64,000 nucleotides of DNA from positions 55,366,001 through 55,430,000 of the forward strand of contig CM060734.1 of assembly GCA_030704615.1 (NCBI GenBank). Reading direction: 5' to 3'. Shown here piece after piece: positions 1-59,305 of the stretch. Position numbers and translations under genes: made by a program. Within the stretch, counting starts at the first letter, position 1. The number at the start of each line of letters is the position of its first letter. Under the pieces are notes generated by a model, which saw only the letters and a program-made list of their open reading frames with translations, ran no database searches and was not told the DNA's origin. Source of the stretch: Takakia lepidozioides (taxonomy: Eukaryota > Plantae > Bryophyta).

Positions 1-770
1 CCAATCTTCTCGTGGACTACGAGATCCACAGTTCCCCCACCCACATCCACAACCAAGAATCGGTGTCCTGATGTCAATTTGAAGTCTTCGAGTTTGAGCT
101 GACAATAAACCGAGGCTGCCTCCGGTTCCAAGACGATCATAGCAGGGTAGGGACTGCCTCCACTAGTAGGAGGACAAAGAGGTCCCTGGACCATTCCAGA
201 AACCTCTAAGCACGTCTTCATCTGCTGTTTCGCGTGATCGTTCCAGATGACGGGAACTGTAACACACCACTGTATGTCATCCTTTGTTAGATGACCTCCG
301 AATCTGGTCTGAACCTCTTGCAGAATAAACTCTGACAACTTGATCAAGTAGTCAGAGATTGCTCTTTGAGAGCTAATGCCTGGAGGTAGTGGTTCAGCTG
401 AAGAGGGTCCCAGGCCATCCCCAGCGAGGTGTAGTTTGAACCTGGTCAGAAAATGCCCCACTGTCATACCCATATCTCTTTCGGCATTTTCAGAGTCGAT
501 GCTCACTTGTGCTGCCCTTGAATACTTCACCATCGCCGGCCACCCCCAATCAACGAGCTCAAAAGAGTCCGGAGTCTCCCCTGGCATGTAGAAGAGGCTT
601 GATTGCGTCTTGCAATACCGCGAGCCTCCTGCACTAGCCTGCATAGGCCAGTCATGGAATGTGTAAATTTTATCGGGCTCAGACCTATGAGAATACGCAA
701 ATCCTGAGAACGTTGTACCAAAATCAAGACCAACTATGATCTTTGCTTCCTCTACCACTACTAGATCCAT
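1..770 (-). CDS. HSPA12-type Hsp70-like protein, 5' part (runs off the left edge of the window)
   Basis: Absent from the ORF track because it is truncated. Manual translation from ATG 770 gives MDLVVVEEAKIIVGLDFGTTFSGFAYSHRSEPDKIYTFHDWP...CKTQSSLFYMP...WGWP...FLTRFKLHL...WCVTVPVIWNDHAKQQM...VLEPEAASVYCQ...FLVVDVGGGTVDLVVHEKI. The frame is open, has no intron, and is a clear paralog of 7171-9060. Confidence 0.9.
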   Translation of the reverse strand, partial: MDLVVVEEAKIIVGLDFGTTFSGFAYSHRSEPDKIYTFHDWPMQASAGGSRYCKTQSSLFYMPGETPDSFELVDWGWPAMVKYSRAAQVSIDSENAERDMGMTVGHFLTRFKLHLAGDGLGPSSAEPLPPGISSQRAISDYLIKLSEFILQEVQTRFGGHLTKDDIQWCVTVPVIWNDHAKQQMKTCLEVSGMVQGPLCPPTSGGSPYPAMIVLEPEAASVYCQLKLEDFKLTSGHRFLVVDVGGGTVDLVVHEKI

Positions 771-1354
771 TGCAATGGCTGCTCGTGCTCGCAAACTTGG
801 CGTCCTAACACTGGACTCCTTCTCCCTCTCGCTCTACTCTCTTAGTGACTAATCTCACCCTCTCTCCTAAGTGATCTGGACTCCCAATTGCTGAGTGTAT
901 ATCGTCAACGGGAGCTCTGAACGTATTTAAGTATGAACTAAGGCCGGCTCCAGATTTACAGTACAAAGGTTCACTGATTGTCTGAAGTCACAGAAATGAT
1001 TGCGAAGTAAGCTGCCAGCACCTAGTTAAAAGGTTAACTTTAAAGATGAATTGTAGGGGTGTTAGACCGGCCCAGTTACTCTGGAAATCCTTGGCGATGT
1101 ACAGCTAACATACTAATCCACTAATCTTTTAGTTCAGCAGGCAACTTCAATCCTGGTGAGAAAGTTTTGAAGAAATACTTCCAGATTGAGCTCCGGGGGG
1201 ATCAGCCCAGCAAGCTCTGTCTGAGTCATGATGTTATGCGCCACCATCGAGAACGTCGAGAGTGCACATCACCTGGCGGCGCCGCGCTGGAGCTAGTCGG
1301 GCCGTCTTTGTTTCTCAAGTGTCAACTTTTTCGCAAAGTGGCGTACTAGTGTAA

Positions 1355-1545
1355 TCATCATGAAAGCCAAAAAAGCCCATCTCGTAAGGAGACCTAGATC
1401 TTCTGTTTTTGGGTTTGGCTGCGGACAGTGCAGAGTCACTCCAGTACAGCAGCGATCGCGTTGTCTAACAGTTAACTGCGAGCTGCAATCTGTTTGATAG
1501 CTAACCACTTCAGTACTTCGGCGGCCGTCGCACCGCATTTCACCA
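1355..1545. repeat. Dispersed ~190-bp non-coding repeat, copy 1
   Basis: Shares blocks such as cagtacagcagcga, ctaacag.taactgcgagctgcaatctgtttg and ccacttcagtactt.ggcggccgtcgcac with 14716-14910, in the same orientation. Confidence 0.8.
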
Positions 1546-3042
1546 TCTGGACTTCAAGTTAATTAGGCAAAATCGGTAGGTGTTCTGGCTCGACTGAAAT
1601 CATTCCACAGCAGCGTAATGTCGCCCTTGGGGCCAGGACCTTGACCTCAGTTGGTTGGGCATTATTGACCCTCATTCGCAGATCCCGGCACTTCTAACAG
1701 AGTGGATCTCAATTAATTCCCCGGTAAATTGGAAAGCGATGTTTGGCATTAAGACAGGGATCCTAAAATCTCTGGTTTCCAACTCGTTTCCTGTCGAAAC
1801 AAGTTTGTAAGCTACCGTATCTTGCCAGTCAATGCTTGCATGTTGGATATTGTCAACCATGCTCGGTCTGCTCTCTGTTGTTACTTGAAACATTGGAACA
1901 TTGCTTGCTGGACTGCCCTTTCGCAAATCACATCTAGAGGCTCTGGCTCTATCTTTGTTCCTTGCAAATGTGTGCAAAGAACGGAGAATGCTGGAGCTGG
2001 CATAGTTGCTAGATTGTCTCCAACTGAAGAGAATTGGCGCAGTTGCGATGGTTTGAAATGGTAGCCTGTTTTTACAGACTCAGAGACCTACAGACTATCA
2101 TTCGCACTGGAAACATGCTGTCCTCTGGGAATTTGATTTGCCTCTTCTGTGATATGTATCTGCAATATTAGACCTGTGCCCACTTCTGTCATACACTGAT
2201 CAATCCCTTCCCAGGTGATACAAATCATCTCGAGCTCACAGACGATAGAGCACCACGATAAAGTAGATAAATTATGAGTCTGCAGGATTAGCTCGCACAA
2301 CTCAGGTAGCTGGGGGAATCACTTGCACATGTATTTCATTACAGTTGTTCATCTGTACGGATTTTACATCACACCAAAGGAAAACATTAAGATTCGCCGT
2401 GAAAGGGATGGAGATGGGAGCAGTGGTAGACAATTTTAGTATTGGAGCTGCTTCGGAAAGTAGGCCAACTGGACGATATAGGCCTACCTCGCTTGAAAGA
2501 ATGGCCGCTGCATGAAAGTCGATATTATCATGCGAGCTGCAGATGATACAAGTTACTTAAGGTCCAAAGTTAACTCGTACAATTAGCGCTTTTCGAGTTA
2601 CATATGTAACCTTTGGGTTCATTACTAAGGGTGAAGGAAACTTGTATTGATTCTACCTCAGTTTCTGTATGCACATCATGATCTGTAAATTTCGTCAATT
2701 CTTCCTGCCATTTTCTCTTCCAAGATTTTCCAGATGGTAGATCAGGGGCCGGTGTATAGTATCAAACCTGGTAAAGCTTCCAACACAAGTCATCAAAACA
2801 TTCAAATGTTCAGTCATTTACAAAGATTCTGTGGCTGATTTGTGAGATGTCTTTTGCACCTGCACATCAGGCTACCGCACCAACTATACTGGAAAATTGG
2901 CCTGGATTTGGATACTAAAATCGCCTAGCCATACAGCCAATTCTGAACACTCGAACAGAAACCAAGCTTATCAGATCTCTCTGTTGTTCAAACCTCAAAT
3001 GCAAGCTCGCCTTAGTTGCCCTACATCAGCTCTCCAGCTCAA

Positions 3043-5278
3043 TCAGCAAGTGATGAAGCGTCCATCAATGAGACATAGGGATTTAGGAGGTGGAACTACG
3101 CTGTTGAGATAAACTTGGGCTTTTATCACAGAATTCCGCACATGAAACCCGGGAGTAGTCATAAAAGCGACCTTCTGCGACCGTTTCTCGTGATCTTCCA
3201 TCGGAACAATAGAGTCCAGGAACTCGCCATTGAATGGTGTATCACGTCCAACCCTGAATATGCTTGCAGGCGGCTCAAAGGAGAACGCCAGTTTATGGAC
3301 CAGCCACACTGCCCTGGCAACTTCTACAAACGTTTCAAAGAAATGGTTATTTGCTGGTTTCTTCCCCTGCGAGATTTCTGTCCAGAGTTGCGAATTTCCA
3401 GGCATTGCGGTTTGTAGGTCGTTGGAAATGACTTGCACAAGCTTTCTCGTAACGAACTCTCCAAACCGTCCCTCCCAATAAGTTGTGCTCGACGATTTGT
3501 TCTGTGTCATTTCTTGGTAGCTTCTAAAACAGTCAGCTCGGTGTTTCTTTGTATCCAAGGCCACACACATATTGAATGGATCCACATCAAAAAAATCGTT
3601 CTCAAAGCCTTGAAACATATGCAAGCATGTCCACCACTCCCAAACATGCTTCAGATTAATATTCCTTGCGAAATGGACTCCCGGGAGATGGGCCATTAAA
3701 AGGCAAGCTTCCATGTGGAACGTCGGATCGTTTTCTCTCAGCTTCTGATATAGAAGCCTCGTAAAAGTCTTCACGGCTATCTGCACTTCTTTGATACCGT
3801 CCCCCAGCATGCGAGGATTGGCATGAGCATCGATGTAGGAACCGCTTGTGACGGACTGACTGGCAGTCTTGCGCTCAATCTGCTCCATCTGCCTCTCCAA
3901 CGTTTCTTTCTTGGAGGTCAATTGGCTATTGCACATCTTCAGAGTTTCAACCTCTTCAACTTTTTCCTCCAGATGTATCTCAAGGTTATGAAGTTGGTTC
4001 CCACGAGCTTCTAGGTCCATGTTTAGCCGACTAACTTCTGCTTCCGCCTTTCCACGCTGCGCGTTTGAAGTTTGAAGGGCCTCAGTTTGCTGTGTATATT
4101 TGCTGGCCCATTCCTTTTCACTCTGTTCAAGCGTAGCGACCTTCATCGTTGCCACAGAAAGATCCGTGCGAAGGGATGCCAGATTCGATTCACGCTCTTT
4201 CTCCCTCAAGATAACTTCAGCTTGAAGGCTTTCGTGTTGCTTCTCCAGCCATGTCAGTAACATGGCAATCAGAGAGCTGTTGAACCGATGATCGGTTTCA
4301 GGTCCTCCAGGAGTTTGCGTCAACAGGAAAGTTGCAAAACTGGAAGCTGCTTTAAACCCACCTCCCCTCGATAAGTTACTGGAACGTCCTCCATGGTCGA
4401 CCATTTCAGAATCTGGTCTCCCTGTCAAAGGATCATTCTGCTGTGTGTGAGTAAGTGAATATGGGGCTATAGCAGGTCCGGTGTCAATGTTGCAGATGAC
4501 CAATTCACCAATCGTGCAAGCATGGACGGGTTCTTCTGTCTGTTCGGTGCCAGAGGCCTTTTTCTGGTTTCTCAAACCCCCAGAATCTCTCTGTCTAAGG
4601 CTTTCAACCTTTCTCTGCAGGTCACACATCAACAAGAAATTCGGAAACTCTGATCTTAGACGATCTGTGCACTAGGACATATCACCTGGATTAAAATATA
4701 TACGTTAAATTTTAAAAGCAACAGACTCTGATCGTGGGTCTAGGCAGGTCAGGATTGAGGACGTGTGTTAAAACAATTTAACTCTATTGATCAATCTACA
4801 GAGTTTCCTGGGAATACATTAGTACATGTGCATGTAGAAGATGCTACTAAATGCTTCCCGGCGATATTCAGCTGTCATGCAGTAGCTTGGGACATGTAAA
4901 GAGCGTTCAATGTCACCGCTCGATTGTATATGCTCGAAATTATAGTGTTCAGCCGCATTAGGTTTTAGTACATCAGCTCTGAACTTCGTGTGTCTAGAGT
5001 TTAGCTTGGTTAGAGCTTGGTGCATTCAAAGTTCGGGGAAAATGTTCATAGGACTTGTAAGTGGTTGGTTATAGTTCAGCGAGTACCTCAGCAGTATTCT
5101 CAGGAGAGCAGACATAGTCTAAATTAGAATTTGCAGACGTATCGAATGTCAGTGCGTTGACATGGACCACTGCTCTCATGCTCAGCGGCTGCTGGGAGCT
5201 GGCGAACTTTAAAGTGGCTGTGCTGCTTGTCCGTTTGCTTCCTCCCATACCCATGGACTCGCGATCTCCTGGCTGCAT
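3043..5278 (-). CDS. Coiled-coil protein with a GIL1/IRK-interacting-protein (DUF641-family-like) C-terminal domain. Probable exons 5278-5087 and 4671-3043.
   Basis: The 530-aa ORF has a long heptad-rich E/K/Q/L region followed by family motifs (HVWEWWTCLHMFQGFEN; FVEVARAVWLVHKLAFSFEPPASIFRV; VAFMTTPGFHVRNSVIKAQVYL). A GT donor at 5086 and an AG acceptor at 4673-4672 join the 5069-5278 ORF in phase 0. An AG directly before ATG 5278 suggests a further upstream exon. Confidence 0.75.
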
Positions 5279-7170
5279 CTACAGAATACCTCCATGCAGA
5301 AATGATAATTTTAGTTTATGATTCCATATCAATATTTGATCTGAAGAAAAGATTTCAGAAGATGCTATCTAGAGGTAGCCCAGCCAAATTAGTACCACTA
5401 TTCTAGCTGGGACGTAATGTGCATGCATGTTCATGTACTATAGAAGTTTCATGTACAGACGAGTAAGATCCCAGGTCTCTTGGCGCTGCTAGCAGTTGGA
5501 CATGATCTACTCTTAGATAGCTAGCGTCTCTTACGGAGAAGCAGGACTTCAGGCAATTGCGAACAATCTAACACACTGAAAAGTGTCTGAAGTCAGGAAA
5601 AATCTTACGACTTCAGCACTACACAATATCAGGGTGATGGATATAAAATGAGATCAACTGCATTGATAGACACCGAGCTCTAGAAGAAGTATAGAGCATT
5701 AGGATGAGAACGAGGACCAGCTTGCAAGTAGAGAACAACAAACCTGGCAGCAGGCATACAAGGTTGATCAATGCCAATGTCCAGATCTTGATCAGTCAGT
5801 GCAGCCCGGTGACGAAGAAAGACGTAATGGCAGGGATCATCCTTTCAAGCCTCCTTTTAGCCGGCCAAAGGTTGTCAACTTTGCTGCCATTGCCAGAAGC
5901 CCTCGAGAGCACTCATTGCAGTTTTGTAACACTAATTCGCTGACGAGATCAAATGCGGCGGCTTACGACGCCTCACTTTGCAGCATCATTTTTTTTGCCC
6001 AGGTGACAGACTTCCGTCTATTTAGAAGGCAATGGGTTCGAGTACATTGCCAATTGATCGTGTACGTCCTCGCTAAATTGGCAACTGATGAGCATTCATC
6101 TTCCCCTCACGATTGAGACGTAGCTGGGATCACCTTCCAAAGTTCCACTCGACCCTAACTAGCTAGCCCGCCCAATGATTTCCTCGAGAGAAAGATTTCG
6201 TTCACATCATCATCAGATCTATTCCCAGTGAGTATTTATGATTGCGAATCCGGGTACATTGTATCATCTGCGCCGCTAAAGAGCGAACGTACAAGTTATA
6301 TAATTATGTACAATGCCTCGGCCGCCGATGTCCAGACGCCTCTCGATCGCCAGCCAAATGTGGGCTGCAACATCGTGTCAACTCGTGTGAGTAAGATCAT
6401 ATAAGATCAGGGCCTATATCGGGCATGCCCGTATACTGATTTGAGCACATTGCATAACTTCATAAACTTTTGTGAGGTCGCAACTCTTGGAGTGGGAATT
6501 TCAACAACTCGATTCAAACAGAATCTTATCGATCGACCCGTTCGCGGGGTGAACTTTGACTTGTAGTGATAGGCCGCCTGTTACTTTTGAAAGAACTTTT
6601 TTTTGGGCGGTGACGTTTTGGATCGCCCGCCGTAGCTCTAAATCGATCGAAGTTGCATGAGCAGCTGCCGCCGAATCGCATTTGACAACGTTACAACTCA
6701 TATTCACTGAATTGAAGGCGTGACCGCTAGGTGCTGTCCAAGGGGCCGGACATTTAAATCTGGAGCTATGAATCTTGCAATTTCATGCAAGTTCCTGGAA
6801 AGGCTGCTAGAGCACTAAGTTGGAGAAGCTGCCAAGGTCTGACGTCACAAGTTTTAATCACGAGTACTTATGTACATGTACATCTATGTCTCTACTGTCC
6901 TATCCGGGTAACAATCATGTGCAGCTAGTACCACTGCAGCTAGGTCCATTGCAGGCACCAGATAGCTTCATGTAAGTTCTTAAGGTGCCTATAAATTGTT
7001 CAGGGGTGCACATACTTTCAGAGCTAATCGACCACAGAGAAGAACCGTAAGACCCAAGTCCTAGCAGTGGGTGGGTGCAGAGGGTTCTGAGCGTCCTCGT
7101 CGATCGTTAGAACCATTCAGAGGGCAGAAGGGATTCGAGCGATCAGAGTGAAGAGTGTGCTAATTAGATC

Positions 7171-9060
7171 ATGGCCGATCTGGCTATGATAGAAGATGCA
7201 AAGGTGGTAGTGGGGCTAGACTTTGGAACAACGTATTCCGGATTTGCGTATGCTCTGAGGTCGGAGCCTGAGAAGATCTACACATTCTATGACTGGCCTT
7301 TGCAGGCTAGGTGCGGAGGTATGCCATATTGCAAAACGCAGACCAGTTTATGGTACATGCCTAGTCCGACCACTCCCGGCTCCTACGAGCTCTGCGACTG
7401 GGGTTGGCCTGCGTTTTTCAACTACAATCTGCACACAGCAAGCTCTCCGAGCGGCCAGTTATCGAGAGCGACTCAAGTTTCGACGAGCCAACTAAGTAAC
7501 GTTTTCGAAAGAATCAGTCTACAGGCTGCTCGTAGCAGCAGCGCCAATCCCGCAGATGTAAGTCATGTGCTGTCCTCCGGCCACTTCCTCACCAAATTCA
7601 AGCTCCATCTGGCTGGGCCAAATGCGGGGCCTTTGTCTGCAGTTGACTTGCCAGAAGGCCTAACGGCTCAGAGAACCATCTCGGACTATCTGACCAAATT
7701 GTCTGAGCTTATTCTGGAAGAGTTGCAGAACAAGTTTGGTCCTCACATAATGAAGGAAGACATCCAGTGGTGTCTAACTGTTCCCGCAATATGGGATGAC
7801 CATGCCAAGAAGCAAATGAAAATCTGTGCCGAAATTGCTGGATTGGTTCAGGGCCCACGCTGTCGAGCAAAAAGCAGGAGCCCTCACCCTCTGCAGATTG
7901 TGTTGGAACCAGAGGCAGCATCCGTTTATTGTCAGCTCAACCTGAGCAGTAATCACCAATGGAGTATGGGAAACAAGTTCATGGTTGTAGATGCTGGCGG
8001 CGGCACTGTGGATATCGTTCTTCACGAGAAGTGCGGTCCTGCATCAAGTCTGAATGTCAGGGAGCTGAAACAGAGCACTGGTGGGCTATGCGGGGGAACA
8101 TATGTCGATGAGGCTTTCTTTGCCTTTCTTGAACGCCAGATCAGTTGCTTTAAGAGATTCGCCAAAGAAAACCCTTCGGCGAAGATATCTCTTTTGCAAT
8201 CGTGGCAGACAATCAAGTATGCATTTGACGGAGAGCAGGCTGGATTTGATCTGGAGCTCCCTCCCAGGCTTGCATCGATGTTGGAAGATGGAGATCATGG
8301 GAAATCAAGTCTGCTCCAGGCCAGCATTATCAGACGTTCCTACGACGAAATTGACCTCAGCAACGGAGTAATGAAGAGTATTTTTGATCCAGTCATAAAG
8401 CAGATTCTCGATCTCATTGATGACAGCATGGTGTGTGACCTCAATGCCATCATGGTCGTTGGAGGGTTCTCAGAGTCCCCATATCTCATGAAAAGAATCA
8501 GGGAGACATTCGCAAGAAGAGTTACTACGATTGTGAGCCCTCCACATCCCGGTAGCTCTGTCTGCTGTGGTGCAGTCACAATGGGCATTCGTGCCAACGT
8601 TGTCATGTCCAGAATCTCAAGAAAGACATACGGTATGTCGGTAGCTGATCTTTTTAAATATGGCACTCATCGCAACGACTACAAGTTCACCAACGATGGA
8701 GTCACCTACTGTCGCAACCTGTTTTCCGTGTTTGTGAAGAGAGGAGATGAGGTTCCAGTGAACTACACTGTAACCCACAGTGATCTAAGTCCATGCAGCA
8801 AACACCAGAGCACCGTACGTATTGAGCTGTACTCTACAACTAGTAGGGATCCAGTCTATGTCACTGACCCTGGAGTTGTCAAAGAGGGGAGTTTCTCAAT
8901 GAGCATTACAAGCCATGCAGCTCTGGGCGTGCGACCACTTATTGCAGTGTCCATGTATTTTGGCCGCTCTGAAGTTCAAATTGAAGCTGTGGGGACAAAT
9001 TTTGGTAGCGGTGAGAAGGAAAGCATGCTTCCTGTGAAGTTTGATAGAGACTTTGTGTAG
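7171..9060 (+). CDS. HSPA12-type Hsp70-like (actin-fold ATPase) protein, intronless, 629 aa
   Basis: Motifs VVGLDFGTTYSGFAY, WCLTVPAIWDDHAKKQM, VLEPEAAS, FMVVDAGGGTVDI, GGLCGGTYVDEAF, VVGGFSESPYL and RISRKTYG are HSPA12-like. There is no EEVD/KDEL and no helical lid, so it is not a canonical cytosolic or ER Hsp70. Confidence 0.9.
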   Translation: MADLAMIEDAKVVVGLDFGTTYSGFAYALRSEPEKIYTFYDWPLQARCGGMPYCKTQTSLWYMPSPTTPGSYELCDWGWPAFFNYNLHTASSPSGQLSRATQVSTSQLSNVFERISLQAARSSSANPADVSHVLSSGHFLTKFKLHLAGPNAGPLSAVDLPEGLTAQRTISDYLTKLSELILEELQNKFGPHIMKEDIQWCLTVPAIWDDHAKKQMKICAEIAGLVQGPRCRAKSRSPHPLQIVLEPEAASVYCQLNLSSNHQWSMGNKFMVVDAGGGTVDIVLHEKCGPASSLNVRELKQSTGGLCGGTYVDEAFFAFLERQISCFKRFAKENPSAKISLLQSWQTIKYAFDGEQAGFDLELPPRLASMLEDGDHGKSSLLQASIIRRSYDEIDLSNGVMKSIFDPVIKQILDLIDDSMVCDLNAIMVVGGFSESPYLMKRIRETFARRVTTIVSPPHPGSSVCCGAVTMGIRANVVMSRISRKTYGMSVADLFKYGTHRNDYKFTNDGVTYCRNLFSVFVKRGDEVPVNYTVTHSDLSPCSKHQSTVRIELYSTTSRDPVYVTDPGVVKEGSFSMSITSHAALGVRPLIAVSMYFGRSEVQIEAVGTNFGSGEKESMLPVKFDRDFV

Positions 9061-9588: not shown

Positions 9589-10355
9589 GCCTCTCATTTT
9601 TGAATAATTGGGAATTTAAGGCGCACGTGCCAGGCAACGGGCCCATGCACAGACGTGGAGGGCGTGGGATGTCGGGCGCACCCGCGACCACCTGGGAGGG
9701 TCCGGGTGTGCTCGCAGGTTGGGTCTGTTGTCAGGTCGGGTCTGCTGACAGGTCGGGTCGGGTCCCCTCACTGCTCACAGGTCGGGTCTCCTCACGGGTC
9801 TTGGGTCCAACTGAATGGTCTGCTCGTCGCGCCGCAGCCCGTCTGCAGCTCGCCCGTGGGACTTAGAAATTTTTGCGGGAGAACTCGCCCATCAAAAAAA
9901 GGATCATTAATACACGTGAGCGCCAGCTAGAATTAATACACATTTGGCACAACCAGATTTGAACCCACAATCTCAGAGGTACCACTCAATGCACCCAACC
10001 ACACTACCCGCTGCTTGCTAATACCCCAACATTTTTTTTCTCTCATAACCTAGAACAGCAGCAGTCAGCCCCAACGACACCCAGGGTCAGGCTTGCGGAC
10101 CTTACCTCGCGGGAGACCCACCCGAGCTGAGTCTTGCCTAGCTGAGTCTTGCCTAGGGCCTGTGGACTATCTGGTGGCAGACCCACCCGGCCGAGTCTTG
10201 CGGCGGAAGACCATCCCTGGGGCAGACCTAACGTCGAGGCAGACCCACCCAGGCCATGTCGTGGGTCCCGAGGGGGCCACCCACGTCCGTGAGTGGGGCC
10301 CGCTACGTGGCGCACATGCGAGCCTTAAACTCCCAATTATTCAACAATGAGAAGC
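9589..10355. mobile_element. Non-autonomous Mutator-like element (MITE), 767 bp
   Basis: TIRs gcctctcatttttgaataattgggaatttaaggc and gccttaaactcccaattattcaacaatgagaagc. A 9-bp TSD CTTTATATG lies at 9580-9588 and 10356-10364. The arms are GC-rich with GGGTC/GACCC motifs and there is no transposase. Confidence 0.85.
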
Positions 10356-32634: not shown

Positions 32635-35481
32635 ATGTGGAGATCGTACTATGGGCGCATGCTCTTTCACATCAGAGTTGAAGGGGCCTCCAAAGACAGG
32701 CCTGCAGTGTTCGGTATGCTGACTTCCTTACCGCCCAATTTATCAAGCCCAGAAAACATGTTGAATGTCAAAACACCTGTCTGCGTGAAGAATATTTTGC
32801 AAGGACGGAATTTGGTTAATCTCTTACACATCTCTATGTCGGAGATATGGGAGCTGCACTCGAAGCAATTTTGTTGTCACTGCAAATTATTATGCAGGGT
32901 AGGCGCGTTTCAACTTTGGAATCAGATGCAGTTGTCAGCTAGGAAGCAGAGTTGCAAGGAGGCAATTAACATGTCCACGATCGCCGTTGCTTCTAGTAGA
33001 TGCGGAAGAGACACACAGAAGGGTAAGGGACGCAATAGGGAACCTTCTGGCATTAGCTTGGATATGATGACAGTATGCAAGGAAGGCCGATTAAAGGAGG
33101 CAGTGCAGCTTTTGGATCTAATGGACCAACGAGGCATTCAGGCATATACCGATTTGTATACCTGTCTCTTGCAAGGATGCGTCAAGAAGAAATCCCTGAC
33201 GATTGGCAAGCAGGTCCATGCCCACATTATCAAATCTGGATTCGAGCTAGACGTGTTTTTAGGGAACAACCTTGTTAGCATGTACACCAAGTGTGGGAGT
33301 GTTGTGGATGCGCGCCAAATTTTCGACAAAATGCCAATTCGAAATGTGGTATCCTGGACAGCGATTATATCAGGATATGTTCAGCAAGGGCATGATACAG
33401 AGGCTCTGGAACTCTTCCGGGAAATGCAACAGGAAGGTGTGAAGCCGGACAAATTTACTTTCAGTACTATCCTCAACGCTTGTACAAGCCCAGCTGCCCT
33501 GGGACAGGGCAGGCATGTCCATGTGCTCCTCATCCAATCTGGATTTGAGTTAGACATCCATGTGGGGACTGCCCTGGTCAACATGTATGCCAAGTGTGGA
33601 AGTCTGGTGGATGCACGTCAAGTATTTGACAAAATGCCTATTCGAAATGTGGTCTCATGGACTGCTATCATTTCAGGATTGGCTCAGCAAGAGCACGGTG
33701 AGGAGGCATTTGAACTATTTTGGCAAATGCTTCGAGAAGGTTTAAAGCCTGACAAGGTCACCTTCGTTAGTATCCTCAATGCATGTGCAGGTGCAGCTGG
33801 TCTGGAACAGGGGAAGAGGATCCATTCCCACATCATTGAAGTTGCTATCGAGTCGGATATGCGTCTGGAGAATGCACTTGTCAGCATGTATACCAGGTGT
33901 GGGAGTGTGGTGGATGCACAACAAGTTTTCAAAAAGATGTGGAGAAGAGATGTGGTCTCATGGACACTGATGATAGCAGGATACGTTCAGCTTGGTCACA
34001 CGAAGGAGGCGTTTGATCTTTTTCGGCAAATGCAGCAGGAGGGGGTGAAGCCTGATACAGTTGCTTTGAAAAGCATCCTAAATGCATGTGCTAGTCCAGC
34101 AGCTTTGAGACAGGGCAAGTATATCCATGCCCACATCATCAACAATGGAATTAAGTCAGATATCCGTCTGGAGAATGCCCTCATCAGCATGTATTTCAGG
34201 TGCGGGGAAGTAGTAGATGCCCGACAACTGTTTGACAAAATGTCAGAACGAGATGTGGTCTCATGGACAGTAATGATTGCAGGATATGCTCAGCATGCTC
34301 ATGGTAAGGAGGCATTTGATCTCTTCTGGGAAATGCTCCGAGAAGGCATGAAGCCTGACAAGGTTGTGTTCGTTGCCATCCTCAATGCATGTGCCAGCCT
34401 AGGTACCCTGGAGCAGGGAAAGCGGATCCACACCCACATTATTAAAGCTGAGTGTCCATCAGATGTCATTGTGGGAAACGCCCTTATTGACATGTATGGA
34501 AAGTGTGGGAGTCTAGAGGATGCACATTATGTGTTCAACGAGATGCTGGAAAGAGATGTGATCTCCTGGACTGCAATGATTCTAGGATATGCTCAGCATG
34601 GGCGTGGCAAGGAGGCCCTTCAGTTCTTTCAACAGATGCAACAGGAAGGGATGAAGCCAGACACAGTTACATTTATTGGGGTTCTTTCTTCCTGCAGCAA
34701 TGCAGGTCTAGTGGATGAAGGCCAGTATTATTTCCACTCCATGAGCAGGGATCATGGTGTTACCCCAACAGTGGGGCACTATGGCTGCATGGTTGACCTT
34801 CTTGGCCGTGCAGGACGCTTGGATGATGCAGAGGACTTGATTAAGAAAATGCCATTTGAACCAGATGCTTCTTTGTGGGGAGCCTTGCTCGGTGCCTGCA
34901 GGGTTTATGGAAATGTGGAACTAGCAGAACGTGCGGCCAAATTTACGCTCAGACTCGAACCACAAAATGCAGGGGTGTATGTGCTGCTATCAAACATCTA
35001 TGCAGCTGCTGGCAGATGGGATAATGTGGTAAAGGTTAGAAAAGTGATGGAGGAGAGAGGTTTGAAAAAGGATGCAGGGCGTAGCTGGATTGAAGTCAAT
35101 AACAAGGTACATTCATTTGTTGGAGAAGATAGATCACACCCACAAACACAGGAAATTTATGCCGAGCTGGAGAGACTAACGGAGCAGATGAAGGAGGCAG
35201 GATATGTGCCTGACACCCGCTTTGTATTGCATGATGTCGATCAGCAGCAAAAAGAACTGGCTCTTTACCACCATAGTGAAAGGTTGGCCATTGTTTTTGG
35301 CCTGATTAGCATGCCTCCCGGAACACCTGTCCGCATCACCAAAAACCTTCGCGTATGTGGTGATTGCCACACTGCCACTAAATTCATTTCCAAGATTGTT
35401 GGGCGAGAAATTGTTGCCAGAGATGCCAACCGCTTTCATCACTTCAAGAATGGGGCCTGCTCTTGTGGGGATTATTGGTGA
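32635..35481 (+). CDS. PLS-class PPR protein with E/E+/DYW domain (organellar C-to-U RNA editing factor). The true start may be a downstream Met.
   Basis: Intronless regular L-S-P triplets, then P2-L2-S2 and E1/E2. The tail reads KKDAGRSWIEV...HSERLA...KNLRVCGDCH...CSCGDYW, with the zinc-deaminase residues intact. Confidence 0.96.
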   Translation: MWRSYYGRMLFHIRVEGASKDRPAVFGMLTSLPPNLSSPENMLNVKTPVCVKNILQGRNLVNLLHISMSEIWELHSKQFCCHCKLLCRVGAFQLWNQMQLSARKQSCKEAINMSTIAVASSRCGRDTQKGKGRNREPSGISLDMMTVCKEGRLKEAVQLLDLMDQRGIQAYTDLYTCLLQGCVKKKSLTIGKQVHAHIIKSGFELDVFLGNNLVSMYTKCGSVVDARQIFDKMPIRNVVSWTAIISGYVQQGHDTEALELFREMQQEGVKPDKFTFSTILNACTSPAALGQGRHVHVLLIQSGFELDIHVGTALVNMYAKCGSLVDARQVFDKMPIRNVVSWTAIISGLAQQEHGEEAFELFWQMLREGLKPDKVTFVSILNACAGAAGLEQGKRIHSHIIEVAIESDMRLENALVSMYTRCGSVVDAQQVFKKMWRRDVVSWTLMIAGYVQLGHTKEAFDLFRQMQQEGVKPDTVALKSILNACASPAALRQGKYIHAHIINNGIKSDIRLENALISMYFRCGEVVDARQLFDKMSERDVVSWTVMIAGYAQHAHGKEAFDLFWEMLREGMKPDKVVFVAILNACASLGTLEQGKRIHTHIIKAECPSDVIVGNALIDMYGKCGSLEDAHYVFNEMLERDVISWTAMILGYAQHGRGKEALQFFQQMQQEGMKPDTVTFIGVLSSCSNAGLVDEGQYYFHSMSRDHGVTPTVGHYGCMVDLLGRAGRLDDAEDLIKKMPFEPDASLWGALLGACRVYGNVELAERAAKFTLRLEPQNAGVYVLLSNIYAAAGRWDNVVKVRKVMEERGLKKDAGRSWIEVNNKVHSFVGEDRSHPQTQEIYAELERLTEQMKEAGYVPDTRFVLHDVDQQQKELALYHHSERLAIVFGLISMPPGTPVRITKNLRVCGDCHTATKFISKIVGREIVARDANRFHHFKNGACSCGDYW

Positions 35482-41810: not shown

Positions 41811-43015
41811 TTACATGGGTCCGTAGACGGGGGCATGGAGGAACAGCTCAGTGACGATGAGAGAGAAGAAGCCGATCATGGCAAGACGACCATTCCAGCG
41901 CTCAGCCCTGGCGTTGAAGGGACCGAAGCTTCGGGCGTCGGTGGATTCTCCATTCATGATTGGCACCAAGGACGCGTATGTGAGCAGTTGCACAGCAATC
42001 AAGAAATATACGAGTCCAGTAGTTCCGGGGTTGAACAGCTGCTCCAGAACTGTCAATCCGGTCATCTTCTCTGCAACAGCCGCCCACACGAATCCCACCA
42101 TAGCCTGCAATGTGCCACCGAAAGAGCTTTCAGCTATAGACATTACTGTACAGAAACAAACTGGATCGCAGAAGTAAGCAGTAACGGTGTCAAGCATTGA
42201 TGTCAGACGGGGGTAACTTATTCAGCTATGTACGAACCTCGCACTTCTGTTGGAGTATATGAGAATCTACATCTTCCTTACAGTGATTCATTGACTTGGT
42301 AGTAAGTAAGCGTGTATATAATTTTAGGAATCATGATTCTAAAGATTGAATTCAAGCCTGCAGATTCTTTCAAATGTCATGCACGAAACCCACATCCCGC
42401 TCCACAATCCCGCGTGCATAAAAGGTGGGTGTCTAGAGAAGATGATGTGGAAGTTTGAAGATCGACGCCAGATACGATATTGACCGTCATATTGACCAGA
42501 AGTCGGTCGTAGATGCGATTACAGTGACTACATAGGGTCCTGAACAGTTAAACTGGGCATTTGTGAGGGGCTAGAGACGAGGACTTATCCGAAAGACAGC
42601 TTACCAAACGTCCATTGATTGTCTCGGGTGCGGCTCCATCGAATGCAAACACGCTTGAAAATCCCTTGCTTCCTGTCTCGGGCCTCCTCTCCACTTCAGG
42701 GCGTGGATAGAGCGACCCAGAGTTTGGCGTCGCTCCAAACACCGACCGCTTCTCCGATTCATTAGTTTCTTGGTTGGTAAGTATCTCATCCCTGGTAATG
42801 TCTTTCTTGGTGACCTTGTCGACTGCGTCCTTCACACCTGCCAATGGTCCCTCACCAGCCTCGCACCGCACTCTTCCGGCAAGGGAGGTCAGTAACCTGG
42901 GAGAGCCTGCAGCTAACCGTGCGCTTCCTATTTTGCTAAACCTAGTGGACTGCATAGGCAAAGCCTGGAGGCCTCCAAGCTGGGCAGTAGCAGTGTGCGA
43001 AATTATGGATGCCAT
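41811..43015 (-). CDS. ELIP: Early light-induced protein (LHC-like, 3 helices), copy A. Exons 43015-42605 and 42104-41811.
   Basis: Transit peptide plus two chlorophyll-binding motifs, FAFDGAAPETINGRL|AMVGF and AERWNGRLAMIGF. The intron is phase 0 and the spliced product is 234 aa. Confidence 0.92.
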
Positions 43016-45735: not shown

Positions 45736-46374
45736 TCATGTTCCACCTTCCGTCCTTTGTGGCATGTGCCATTGACATGGTCGTGTTGTAGGAGATGTCA
45801 TACCTGGGCCGATTTGTCGTAGCGGCGCCAGTAAAGATAACTGCTGTTGTTGCAGGTGGTATGTTGTCATACGCACCAGTAAAAGCAGCCGCTGCTGCAG
45901 GTGGTATTTTGACATCACCTTGTTTGCCTGACAGATTTCGTCTCTTCCGTAGCTTTCCTCCAAGGGTGAACCTGAATTTTGTTTTACGGTCAGGGCTATC
46001 GCAAAGTCCACTTCGACATTCAGCGAGGCTGGCTTTTGTTGATAGATCCAGTAGAGGAACTTAATGTTTTCAGAAAAACAGCGAGGACACTTCTTCTCAC
46101 CTAGATGCAGGACCAGAAAAGCTGCAAGAGGGGCGTCTCCATCTCCATGACTGTTTCTTTTTCTTTTCTTTGTTGGTGTAGCCACTTGTGCTTGAGCGCC
46201 ATCCAACTCTCCTGCATGGGGATGTTGCACGTTGGCTACCCCCAAGAAGTCACCTTCATCAACTTCCATACAACTCTCCAGCTCGCTCTCAAGCAACATC
46301 GAAAAATTTATCTCTCCAAGGTCATCGACCTCTACAAGACCTCTATTGTGTTCCAGTTCTTGCGCCATGGTCAT
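45736..46374 (-). pseudogene. Degenerate Dof-like zinc-finger gene remnant
   Basis: NLS-like KKRKR, then CPRCFSENIKFLY. NKSQPR and ECRSGLC follow in other reading frames. The Dof consensus is CPRCxSxxTKFCYYNNYxxxQPRxxCxxC. Confidence 0.55.
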
Positions 46375-48684: not shown

Positions 48685-49889
48685 ATGGCATCCTTAATGT
48701 CGCACACTGCTACTGCCCAGCTTGGAGGCCTCCAGGCTTTGTCTATGCAGTCCACTAGGTTTAGCAAAATAGGAAGCGCACGGTTAGCTGCAGGCTCTCC
48801 CAGGTTACTGACCTCCCTTGCCGGAAGAGTGCGGTGCGAGGCTGGTGAGGGACCATTGGCAGGTGTGAAGGACGCAGTCGACAAGGTCACCAAGAAAGAC
48901 ATTACCAGGGATGAGATACTTACCAACCAAGAAACTAATGAATCGGAGAAGCGGTCGGTGTTTGGAGCGACGCCAAACTCTGGGTCGCTCTATCCACGCC
49001 CTGAAGTGGAGAGGAGGCCCGAGACAGGAAGCAAGGGATTTTCAAGCGTGTTTGCATTCGATGGAGCCGCACCCGAGACAATCAATGGACGTTTGGTAAG
49101 CTGTCTTTCGGATAAGTCCTCGTCTCTAGCCCCTCACAAATGCCCAGTTTAACTGTTCAGGACCCTATGTAGTCACTGTAATCACATCTACGACCGACTT
49201 CTGGTCAATATGACGGTCAATATCGTATCTGGCGTCGATCTTCAAACTTCCACATCATCTTCTCTAGACACCCACCTTTTATGCACGCGGGATTGTGGAG
49301 CGGGATGTGGGTTTCGTGCATGACATTTGAAAGAATCTGCAGGCTTGAATTCAATCTTTAGAATCATGATTCCTAAAATTATATACACGCTTACTTACTA
49401 CCAAGTCAATGAATCACTGTAAGGAAGATGTAGATTCTCATATACTCCAACAGAAGTGCGAGGTTCGTACATAGCTGAATAAGTTACCCCCGTCTGACAT
49501 CAATGCTTGACACCGTTACTGCTTACTTCTGCGATCTAGTTTGTTTCTGTACAGTAATGTCTATAGCTGAAAGCTCTTTCGGTGGCACATTGCAGGCTAT
49601 GGTGGGATTCGTGTGGGCGGCTGTTGCAGAGAAGACGACCGGATTGACAGTTCTGGAGCAGCTGTTCAACCCCGGAACTACTGGACTCGTATATTTCTTG
49701 ATTGCTGTGCAACTGCTCACATACGCGTCCTTGGTGCCAATCATGAATGGAGAATCCACCGACGCCCGAAGCTTCGGTCCCTTCAACGCCAGGGCTGAGC
49801 GCTGGAATGGTCGTCTTGCCATGATCGGCTTCTTCTCTCTCATCGTCACTGAGCTGTTCCTCCATGCCCCCGTCTACGGACCCATGTAA
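48685..49889 (+). CDS. ELIP: Early light-induced protein, copy B. Exons 48685-49095 and 49596-49889.
   Basis: Near-identical inverted copy of 41811-43015. I see 4 amino-acid differences, and the splice sites are intact. Confidence 0.92.
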
Positions 49890-56967: not shown

Positions 56968-59305
56968 ATGTTTGAGACATGCAGGATGTCAGGGTTGACT
57001 CACGTACAATTCTGTGTTGGGCATCAGACTGATGTGAGGGATAGTAATTCTACCATCACCACTAGTGGAGCAAGAGATTTTCTCAGCAAGAATTCAGTGA
57101 GCATTTGTGGCGATGTGAGGATACTATGCAACGCTGGACGACTGAAAGAGGCAGTGAGCATTCTGAACCAAGAAGTCATCTGGGCTGATTGCAATACTTA
57201 TGTTTGTGTCTTGGAGGAGTGCATCAATATGAAAGGCCTAGCAGAGGGAAAGCAGGTGCATGCCCACATTATCCAAAGTGGTCTCAAGGCAAATGTCTTT
57301 CTCCACAAGACCCTTTTGAAAATGTATGCCAAGTGTGGGAGCATGGTGGATGCACACATAGTGTTCAACAATATGCCTGAACGAGATATTGTTAGCTGGA
57401 ATATGATGATAGCAGGATATGCGAAGCATGGGGATGGTAGGGAGGGGTTGCAAATCTATGAGCAAATGCAAAGGGAAGGGGTGAAGCCCAACAGGATTAC
57501 TTTTACTTGTGTTCTCAATGCATGTACCAGCCTATGCGCTCTGGAGAAGGGCAAAGCAGTTCATGCTGACATGATCAAGTCTGGAATTGCACGAAATATC
57601 GTTCTGGAAACTGCCTTAATAAACATGTATGCAAAATGTGGAAGCATGAAGAATGCCCATAAATTGTTCAATAATATGGCTCAACGAGATGTGGTCTCAT
57701 GGAACGCTATGATTGCAGGATACTCTCAGCATGGGCGTGGTATGGAGGCTGTTGAGGTCTATGAGCACATGCAACAGGAACAGGTGCTGCCGGACAGGGT
57801 CACATTCATTTGTGTCCTTAATGCGTGTGCCAACTTAGGAGCCCTGGACAAGGGCAAACAGATCCATGCTGCCATCATCAAAGCTGGAATTGGGTCAAAC
57901 ATAAATTTGGAGAATACCCTTGTGGACATGTATGGGAAATGTGGAAGCATGGAGGATGCTCTTCGAGTATTTGACAATATGGCTCGGAGAGATGTAGTCT
58001 CATGGAATGCCATGATCACAGGATTTGCTCAACATGGGTGTGGCATAGAGGCTTTTGATGTATTTGAGCAAATGCAACGGGAATTTGTGAGACCTGATAG
58101 AGTCACGTTCATCTGCGTTCTCAATGCGTGTGCCAGTCTAGGAGCCCTGGAAAAGGGCAAAGAGGTACATGCTCACCTGATCAAATCTGGGATTGTGTCA
58201 CATATTACTTTAGAGACTGCCCTTGTTGATATGTATGCCAAATGTGGGAGCATGGAGGATGCGTCTGAAGTCTTCAACAATATGGCCCAACGAGATGTGG
58301 TCACATGGAGTGCAATGATTGCAGGGTGCGCCCAGCATGGGTGTGCTAGGAAGGCTTTTGAGATGTATGAGCAAATGCAACTGAAAGGGGTAACACCCAA
58401 CCAGGTTACATTTCTTTCCGTTCTCAATGTGTGTGCGAACCTAGGAGCCCTGGAAAAGGGCAGAGAGGTCCATGCTCACATCATCAAAACTGGAATCATG
58501 TCAGATTTAAATTTGGACACTGCCCTTGTTGACATGTATGCCAAATGCGGGAGCATGGACGGTGCTCATGAAGTGTTTGACCAAATGGCTAAACGAGATG
58601 TGGTCTCCTGGAACACCATGATTGCTGGATGTGCCCAGCATGGGTGTGGTAGGGATGCCCTGCAACTATTTGAGAAGATGCAGCAGGAAGGCTTGAAGCC
58701 AGATGGAATAACATTTATGTCTGTTCTCTCTGGATGTAGCCATGGGGGCCTAGTGGATGAAGGCTGTCATTATTTTACTTCTATGAGTCAAGATCATGCT
58801 CTCAATCCTACAGTGGACCATTTTGGCTGCATAGTTGACCTCTTCGGCCGTGCAGGGAAATTGGATGAGGCAGAGGACTTCATTAATAAAATGCCAACCA
58901 AACCAGGTGCTGGAGTGTGGAGGGCCTTGCTTAGTGCCTGCAGGAAAAATGGGGATGTAATAAGGTAGCAGAATTTACTGCAAAAGGTGATCTACAACAT
59001 GCTTAGTTTATGTGCTGCTATCGAACCTCTATGCTGGGACCATTCTTGGGAAGATACAGTACAGGTGACAAAAATGGTGGAGGAATTATGATGGAAGAGC
59101 AAGGCGGCACCTGCATAGAAACTGACAACCAGTAGGATCCGTTGCGTGTGACAGACAAATTACATCCACAAATCGAGGAAATCCATAGTACGCTGAACAG
59201 ATTGCCTGGCAAATGAAAGAGGTCAGGTATGTGCCCAATATACACTCTGTATTGCATGAGTTGGAGCAAGAGCAACAGGAGTCTTCTCTTTGCCATCATA
59301 GTGAG
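56968..59305 (+). pseudogene. PLS-class PPR gene with an intact repeat array (ORF 56968-58968) but a frameshifted E/E+ region and a DYW domain cut off after HHSE
   Basis: The ORF stops in E1 (KNGDVIR*). Downstream frames carry VYVLLSNLYA, HPQIEEIH and QMKEVRYVPNIHSVLHELEQEQQESSLCHHSE, followed by a stop and unrelated sequence. Confidence 0.85.

Follow-up and report, generated by a model that had tools for sequence, protein, structure and literature searches.

How does an Hsp70 gene in a plant nuclear genome come to lie beside a gene for a protein with a GrpE-like end, and do the two products work together? This question is raised by a 64,000-nucleotide stretch of the Takakia lepidozioides (Bryophyta) genome (assembly GCA_030704615.1, contig CM060734.1, positions 55,366,001 to 55,430,000 of the forward strand; hereafter the window), in which a gene of the GIL1/IRKI family, here called the partner, lies between two genes for Hsp70-like proteins, Hsp70 A and Hsp70 B. 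A sequence-only reading of the window had taken the three for a dedicated chaperone module. Reading frames and Pfam matches place the genes as it had claimed (Hsp70 A on the minus strand from 770, the partner on the minus strand, Hsp70 B on the plus strand from 7171), the C-terminal motif that it quoted is present in the partner frame, and its interpretation as a whole is partly supported. We consider it probable that the locus is one copy of an old two-component module, in which an HSPA12-type Hsp70 is paired with its own GrpE-derived partner.

Domain structure and fold of the partner

The main coding exon of the partner (3043..4440, minus strand, as are all partner features) encodes the GIL1_IRKI_C domain PF24994 at about 3109-3261, with an expectation value (E) of 1.3e-8 and 35.1 bits against a cut-off of 27; the Pfam search found no match to DUF641 (PF04859) in this exon. 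We found 303 relatives, and the partner tree groups the protein with Sphagnum and Ceratodon proteins (99% support in the Shimodaira-Hasegawa-like approximate likelihood ratio test, SH-aLRT). The analysis showed a predicted architecture of coiled coil, helical domain and GrpE-fold head. The long predicted coiled coil (3870..4260) is a proline-free stretch of ∼135 amino acids N-terminal to the globular part, predicted from its composition, which is rich in E, K, Q, R and L, and from weak matches to myosin-type coiled coils. The helical domain (3367..3852) opens with a helix that aligns to GrpE, and the next ∼130 residues have no counterpart there. The C-terminal unit (3097..3366), which includes PF24994, consists in the predicted model of one helix and a beta-domain.

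The structural similarity to GrpE that had been proposed from the sequence was borne out by the predicted models. The model of the 252-residue globular part (predicted local distance difference test, pLDDT, 90.7) was compared with 48,161 chains, among which GrpE took ranks 1, 2 and 5 at Z ∼5, with 106-111 residues aligned from the first helix through the last strand. When the last 90 residues were modeled alone (pLDDT 91.4), the top four of the same chains were all GrpE (Z 6.8, 5.7, 5.5 and 5.3; next 2.8), over alignments of 75-83 residues at a root-mean-square deviation of 3.6-6.4. Foldseek with the 90-residue model returned GrpE in all of its top 12 rows (probability 0.82-0.97, template-modeling (TM) score 0.45-0.55). 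The 252-residue model was uninformative in Foldseek, with GrpE at rank 19 and E=0.85, and the isolated C-terminal unit alone resolved the fold. No viral structural match was found.

The structural matches reach beyond plants. The plant partner domain matched a DUF641-containing structure cluster at TM 0.89, clusters from Mucoromycota, Ascomycota and Basidiomycota at 0.66-0.68, and animal Mieap, with which a comparison had also been suggested, at 0.56; among the fungal matches are proteins in which the partner fold is fused to a G domain. The helical domain is common to the fungal, bacterial and Mieap-like relatives.

A weak signal was also seen in sequence comparisons. The Pfam GrpE model was weakly matched by 10 of 108 family members (best E=0.0011), and any other stray family by one. 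The window partner itself gives no match to the Pfam GrpE model PF01025 and lies below its gathering cut-off; sequence searches of the PDB with the partner returned no GrpE, and word-indexed homologue searches with it gave nothing useful. The fold of the GrpE beta-domain is a rare one. Because this rare fold is combined with the same order of parts and a weak sequence signal, we favor common ancestry, in which the C-terminus of the partner, as modeled, would descend from GrpE.

Hsp70 genes and their linkage to partner genes

Both Hsp70-like proteins are classed as HSPA12-like, an assignment that follows from database names and architecture; the tree of these proteins covers no named animal sequence. 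Hsp70 A (1..770, minus strand) is present as its 5' part, open for 256 codons from the ATG at 770 to the window edge; it matches Pfam HSP70 weakly (E=0.0055) and a hidden Markov model (HMM) of plant HSPA12-like proteins at E=6.5e-104. Hsp70 B (7171..9060, plus strand) is intronless, encodes 629 amino acids and matches Pfam HSP70 at E=1.5e-9. The two are 56% identical across their overlap and neighbor Ceratodon copies in a quick tree. Compared with DnaK, Hsp70 B has retained the phosphate-1, catalytic Glu and phosphate-2 motifs; its linker is altered, and the protein stops at about DnaK residue 508, short of the alpha-helical lid. The canonical DnaK family model gave it 33 bits, below the cut-off of 822, and the hydrophobic linker and lid were also not matched. 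Its closest relatives (40-52% identity), of which one is named 12A-like, come from mosses, liverworts, lycophytes, ferns and Klebsormidium; no seed plant appears in the named rows of the best 120 relatives, a listing that is no test of absence.

The linkage recurs in other genomes, a check proposed with the sequence-only reading: adjacency of the Hsp70 and the partner persists in streptophytes, fungus-like contigs and bacteria. Nine plant Hsp70 relatives were picked blind to their neighbors, and 10 kb was inspected on each side. A partner was linked at three of the nine loci, which has a probability of 1e-5 to 8e-3 under assumed backgrounds of 0.5-5%. Ceratodon has the trio of the window in identical orientations, and Calypogeia and Klebsormidium each have a head-to-head Hsp70-partner pair with a second partner copy nearby. 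When partner genes were taken as the starting point, one moss contig proved to carry an Hsp70 in tandem. Moreover, a second Ceratodon strain has an Hsp70 and a partner with adjacent locus tags, and at three further Calypogeia loci the accessions of the two are 2-5 numbers apart. The linked land-plant Hsp70s fall in one subclade of the Hsp70 tree, and the linked partners lie outside a 66-row clade that contains the GIL1-annotated proteins. No natural fusion of Hsp70 and partner was found among the fetched proteins.

One side observation concerns the two Ceratodon strains. In one of them the partner is the next gene (M758_4G090500/090600), and at the corresponding locus of the other (L001) no partner lies within 10 kb and the assembly shows no gap; this may be a presence/absence polymorphism of the partner.

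The module had been proposed for a plant nuclear genome; the plant loci agree with this, and the arrangement is not specific to plants. Full-length bacterial relatives turned up when the Hsp70 alignment was used for scanning; the plant profile scores them at E ∼1e-85 to 1e-120. At seven of eight bacterial HSPA12-like loci, the exception being Frankia umida, a partner gene lies directly downstream and its product ends in a related motif, and a coiled coil is present in those bacterial partners that were checked. Three gammaproteobacterial partners align to the plant partner profile in hhalign (probability 85%, E=6e-6), and in a search of 15,458 translated segments with the gammaproteobacterial partner HMM the plant partners were the next hits. 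The Atlas model of the Ca. Parabeggiatoa partner has TM scores of 0.66-0.67 to GIL1_IRKI_C and 0.66 to MIEAP, and also matches fungal and actinobacterial clusters. The actinobacterial partners are more distant (hhalign probability 6% against the plant profile); their connection runs through the gammaproteobacterial partners (probability 88%) and a combined profile. In held-out Streptomyces plasmids, examined after the scoring profile had been built, a partner was directly downstream in four of four, at E 1e-4 to 1e-7.

Four eukaryotic-looking metagenome contigs, labeled fungus-like by their split reading frames and by the Atlas taxa, without direct assignment, carry related partners, head-to-head with the Hsp70 in two (L017, L018) and in tandem in the other two (L028, L031). 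Coiled-coil neighbors to HSPA12-like genes at L022:7013-8564, L032:400-1785 and L044:7495-8535 have partner-like C-termini by eye; they were missed by the combined profile and are not counted.

The surroundings of several of these loci are of interest in themselves. The Streptomyces plasmids (L051-L054) carry a minimal two-gene cassette, an Hsp70-like protein with a partner of 229-244 amino acids, and Abi or HNH genes lie near two of them. An operon-like run in Ca. Parabeggiatoa (L040:2560-12493) encodes a 683-residue protein, an HSPA12-like protein, a GrpE-like partner, a dynamin-like GTPase and a DO-GTPase, and looks like an undescribed conflict system. In high-GC sequence (L015:2892-12604 and L025), the HSPA12-like gene and its partner are preceded by a dynamin-like gene and by genes for a second long Hsp70-like protein and for a protein of ∼407 residues with a C-terminus that is GrpE-like by eye. 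On a fungus-like contig (L035:2-3361), a divergent Hsp70-like domain with ankyrin-like repeats (by eye) is encoded head-to-head with an HSPA12-like gene.

Proposed function and alternative explanations

We think that the locus probably encodes a dedicated HSPA12-type ATPase and a GrpE-derived regulator, most plausibly a nucleotide-exchange factor. By analogy with DnaK and GrpE, the partner would dimerize through its coiled coil, and the dimer would dock on the nucleotide-binding domain of the neighboring Hsp70, much as GrpE does on DnaK, and set its nucleotide state, most likely through ADP release; on balance we expect this scheme to hold. In the trio, a single partner would serve both Hsp70 paralogues. 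The DUF641 protein COST1 is itself a dimer that binds an NTPase in a 2:2 complex (PMC13189119). With weaker confidence, the switch may serve defense, stress or membrane remodeling rather than general folding, dynamin-like GTPases often being encoded alongside; we rate defense or membrane remodeling as likelier than bulk folding. A defense role is hinted at because the distribution is patchy, with local expansion, plasmid carriage and occurrence in several filamentous bacteria. It is weak because the PADLOC defense-protein models gave no match beyond weak JetC/LmuB hits over the coiled coils.

Several observations weigh against an exchange-factor pair. Six of the nine plant Hsp70 loci have no partner within 10 kb, and approached from the partner side one Sphagnum locus has no Hsp70 within that distance. 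Each family exists in multiple copies in non-seed plants, many of them unlinked, and the linkage counts are not independent because the sampled loci share descent. The structural scores are moderate (Foldseek E for GrpE of 0.09-0.7, Z below 8). The GrpE motif spacing, which had been judged by eye, is reproduced in a direct alignment with E. coli GrpE in the proposed register, but the score is marginal (P=0.027, with 1 of 100 shuffles scoring higher). The view of the partner as a divergent GrpE keeps the fold and has to accommodate the marginal sequence similarity and the large helical insert of ∼130 residues, which could mask the DnaK-binding face; the 252-residue model has no compact bundle of the kind that in GrpE leads straight from the coiled coil into the beta-domain. 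Finally, GrpE G122, which is required for nucleotide exchange (10.1101/2025.10.21.683677), stands opposite a near-invariant Phe of the partner family in a low-identity alignment.

The insert and the apparent loss of G122 would fit a partner that works with the Hsp70 as an adaptor, an inhibitor or a sensor, for example as a tether to a dynamin-like GTPase or a membrane, or as one half of an immune guard/effector couple, instead of as an exchange factor. Genes for dynamin-like or other GTPases share bacterial operons with the pair (L040, L041, L015), fungal proteins exist in which the partner fold and a G domain are fused, and COST1 stimulates the dynamin-like GTPase RHD3, with which it forms its 2:2 complex (PMC13189119). 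However, the constant neighbor is the Hsp70 and not a GTPase, the Streptomyces cassettes have two genes only, and the partner has kept the fold of an Hsp70 exchange factor. We hold this explanation to be rather unlikely, yet a serious competitor.

It is less likely still that the locus is an inherited cassette, derived from an old operon that later became a head-to-head pair and possibly spread laterally, whose genes are co-regulated and whose products no longer interact in this plant. The many unlinked copies of each family, the concentration of land-plant linkage in one Hsp70 subclade and the presence of the partner within 10 kb in one Ceratodon strain and not in the other would all be expected of such a cassette. 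Against it, adjacency in moss, liverwort, alga and fungus-like contigs has survived varied orientations (head-to-head, tandem and trio) and repeated duplication, and passive synteny rarely persists through such reorientation and duplication over such distances. Chance adjacency of two expanded families, together with convergent resemblance to GrpE, draws on the multi-copy state of both families and on the moderate structural scores; it is hard to reconcile with the three of nine plant loci at the assumed backgrounds, with a partner at 11 of 12 bacterial loci, or with the finding that GrpE chains alone score above background. Chance is thus largely refuted already and very improbable.

The surrounding window and known systems

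The 5' end of the partner had been placed at 5278. A putative first coding exon of 64 codons (5087..5278, minus strand) with a phase-0 donor joins the main exon at 4440 through canonical donor and acceptor sites, in phase; the exon is unverified and showed no similarity when compared with family members, and all partner searches used the main exon alone as query. The main frame is open from 3043 to 4671 (listed open reading frame 3043-4635), with its first in-frame ATG at 4404. Because the first exon is putative, the distance from the partner to Hsp70 B depends on the model, 1.9 kb with that exon and 2.8 kb with a start at 4404. The intergenic region between the divergent genes (5279..7170) has no notable repeats, and the two genes may be co-regulated across it. 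A 12-nucleotide word common to the regions upstream of Hsp70 A and of the partner is at chance level (∼3 such pairs expected per 9.6 kb) and was dropped.

Directly downstream of Hsp70 B, a GC-rich segment with short GGGTC-type repeats (∼9620-10350) is possibly a small transposon. Elsewhere in the window are near-identical gene duplicates ∼6.1 kb apart that resemble early light-induced proteins by eye (42548-43015 and 48685-49152), two PLS-type PPR genes (32635-35481 and 56968-58968), of which by eye the first has a DYW end and the second an early stop within the E region, and a possibly broken open reading frame (45736-46374) in which, by eye, unrelated sequence comes after the apparent first half of a Dof zinc finger.

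The locus resembles DnaK-GrpE and mortalin-GrpEL1 in that an Hsp70 gene adjoins a gene for a predicted coiled-coil protein ending in a GrpE helix and beta-domain, and in that the ATPase motifs of the Hsp70 are conserved. Unlike DnaK, however, the window Hsp70 is of the HSPA12 type, lacks the lid, has an altered linker and falls far under the DnaK family cut-offs, and the partner is about twice as long as GrpE, contains the helical insert and scores too low for the Pfam GrpE cut-off. A J-domain gene was not a consistent feature of the loci, and here the linked genes are nuclear genes of eukaryotes, which are thought to have no cytosolic GrpE (PMC13580251). The pair would work like DnaK-GrpE, yet it falls outside both families under strict criteria. 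Hsp70 and GrpE are also paired in the predicted bacterial immunity of the DO-GTPase GAP1-N2 conflict systems, in a paper that mentions neither HSPA12 nor Mieap (PMC7159879); L040 likewise encodes a DO-GTPase, whereas GAP1, FNIII and often DnaJ fusions belong to those systems and most loci here have no DO-GTPase.

The partner shares PF24994 with the GIL1, IRK-interacting, COST1-CHIQUITA and RTA9 proteins (DUF641 plus PF24994), and its whole domain matches a DUF641-containing cluster at TM 0.89, but it has no DUF641 match and, outside the large clade annotated as GIL1, groups with Hsp70-linked copies from mosses. The known partners of seed-plant DUF641-family proteins are RHD3 (PMC13189119) and S40 (PMC12697904), not Hsp70s. 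The role that had been suggested for the whole GIL1/IRKI family is accordingly weaker, the linked copies lying outside that clade and the COST1 partner being a GTPase. Mieap/SPATA18 (PF16026) is similar in joining a coiled coil to a structured C-terminal region; it is a mitochondrial quality-control and condensate protein, described in a paper that mentions neither GrpE nor Hsp70 (PMC10845071). For HSPA12A/B, a 2026 review gives the function as unknown and names no dedicated co-chaperone (PMC13580251); a pairing of the plant, fungal and bacterial proteins with such a partner is undescribed in the literature found. In our literature search, which left subscription journals mostly outside, no paper connected GrpE with GIL1/IRKI/COST1 or with Mieap, or HSPA12 with either of these two. 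A 2026 paper called the COST1/DUF641 proteins plant-specific and sought structural counterparts outside plants (PMC13189119).

These data suggest that the GIL1/IRKI-type partner is a long-overlooked partner of HSPA12-type Hsp70s. The locus offers one testable answer to three gaps, namely the partner of HSPA12, the GrpE ancestry of the GIL1/IRKI C-terminal domain, and the non-plant counterparts of these proteins, Mieap included, and the small two-gene bacterial versions ease biochemistry. More tentatively, and with somewhat more doubt than confidence, we suggest that GIL1/IRKI/COST1 in plants, Mieap in animals and the unnamed fungal and bacterial proteins belong to a single superfamily, derived from GrpE, that ancestrally regulated HSPA12-type Hsp70s. 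If so, animal HSPA12 would have its missing co-chaperones in the Mieap-like proteins, and eukaryotes would have retained a non-organellar GrpE-Hsp70 system, as a gene pair, for cell-autonomous defense or membrane remodeling.

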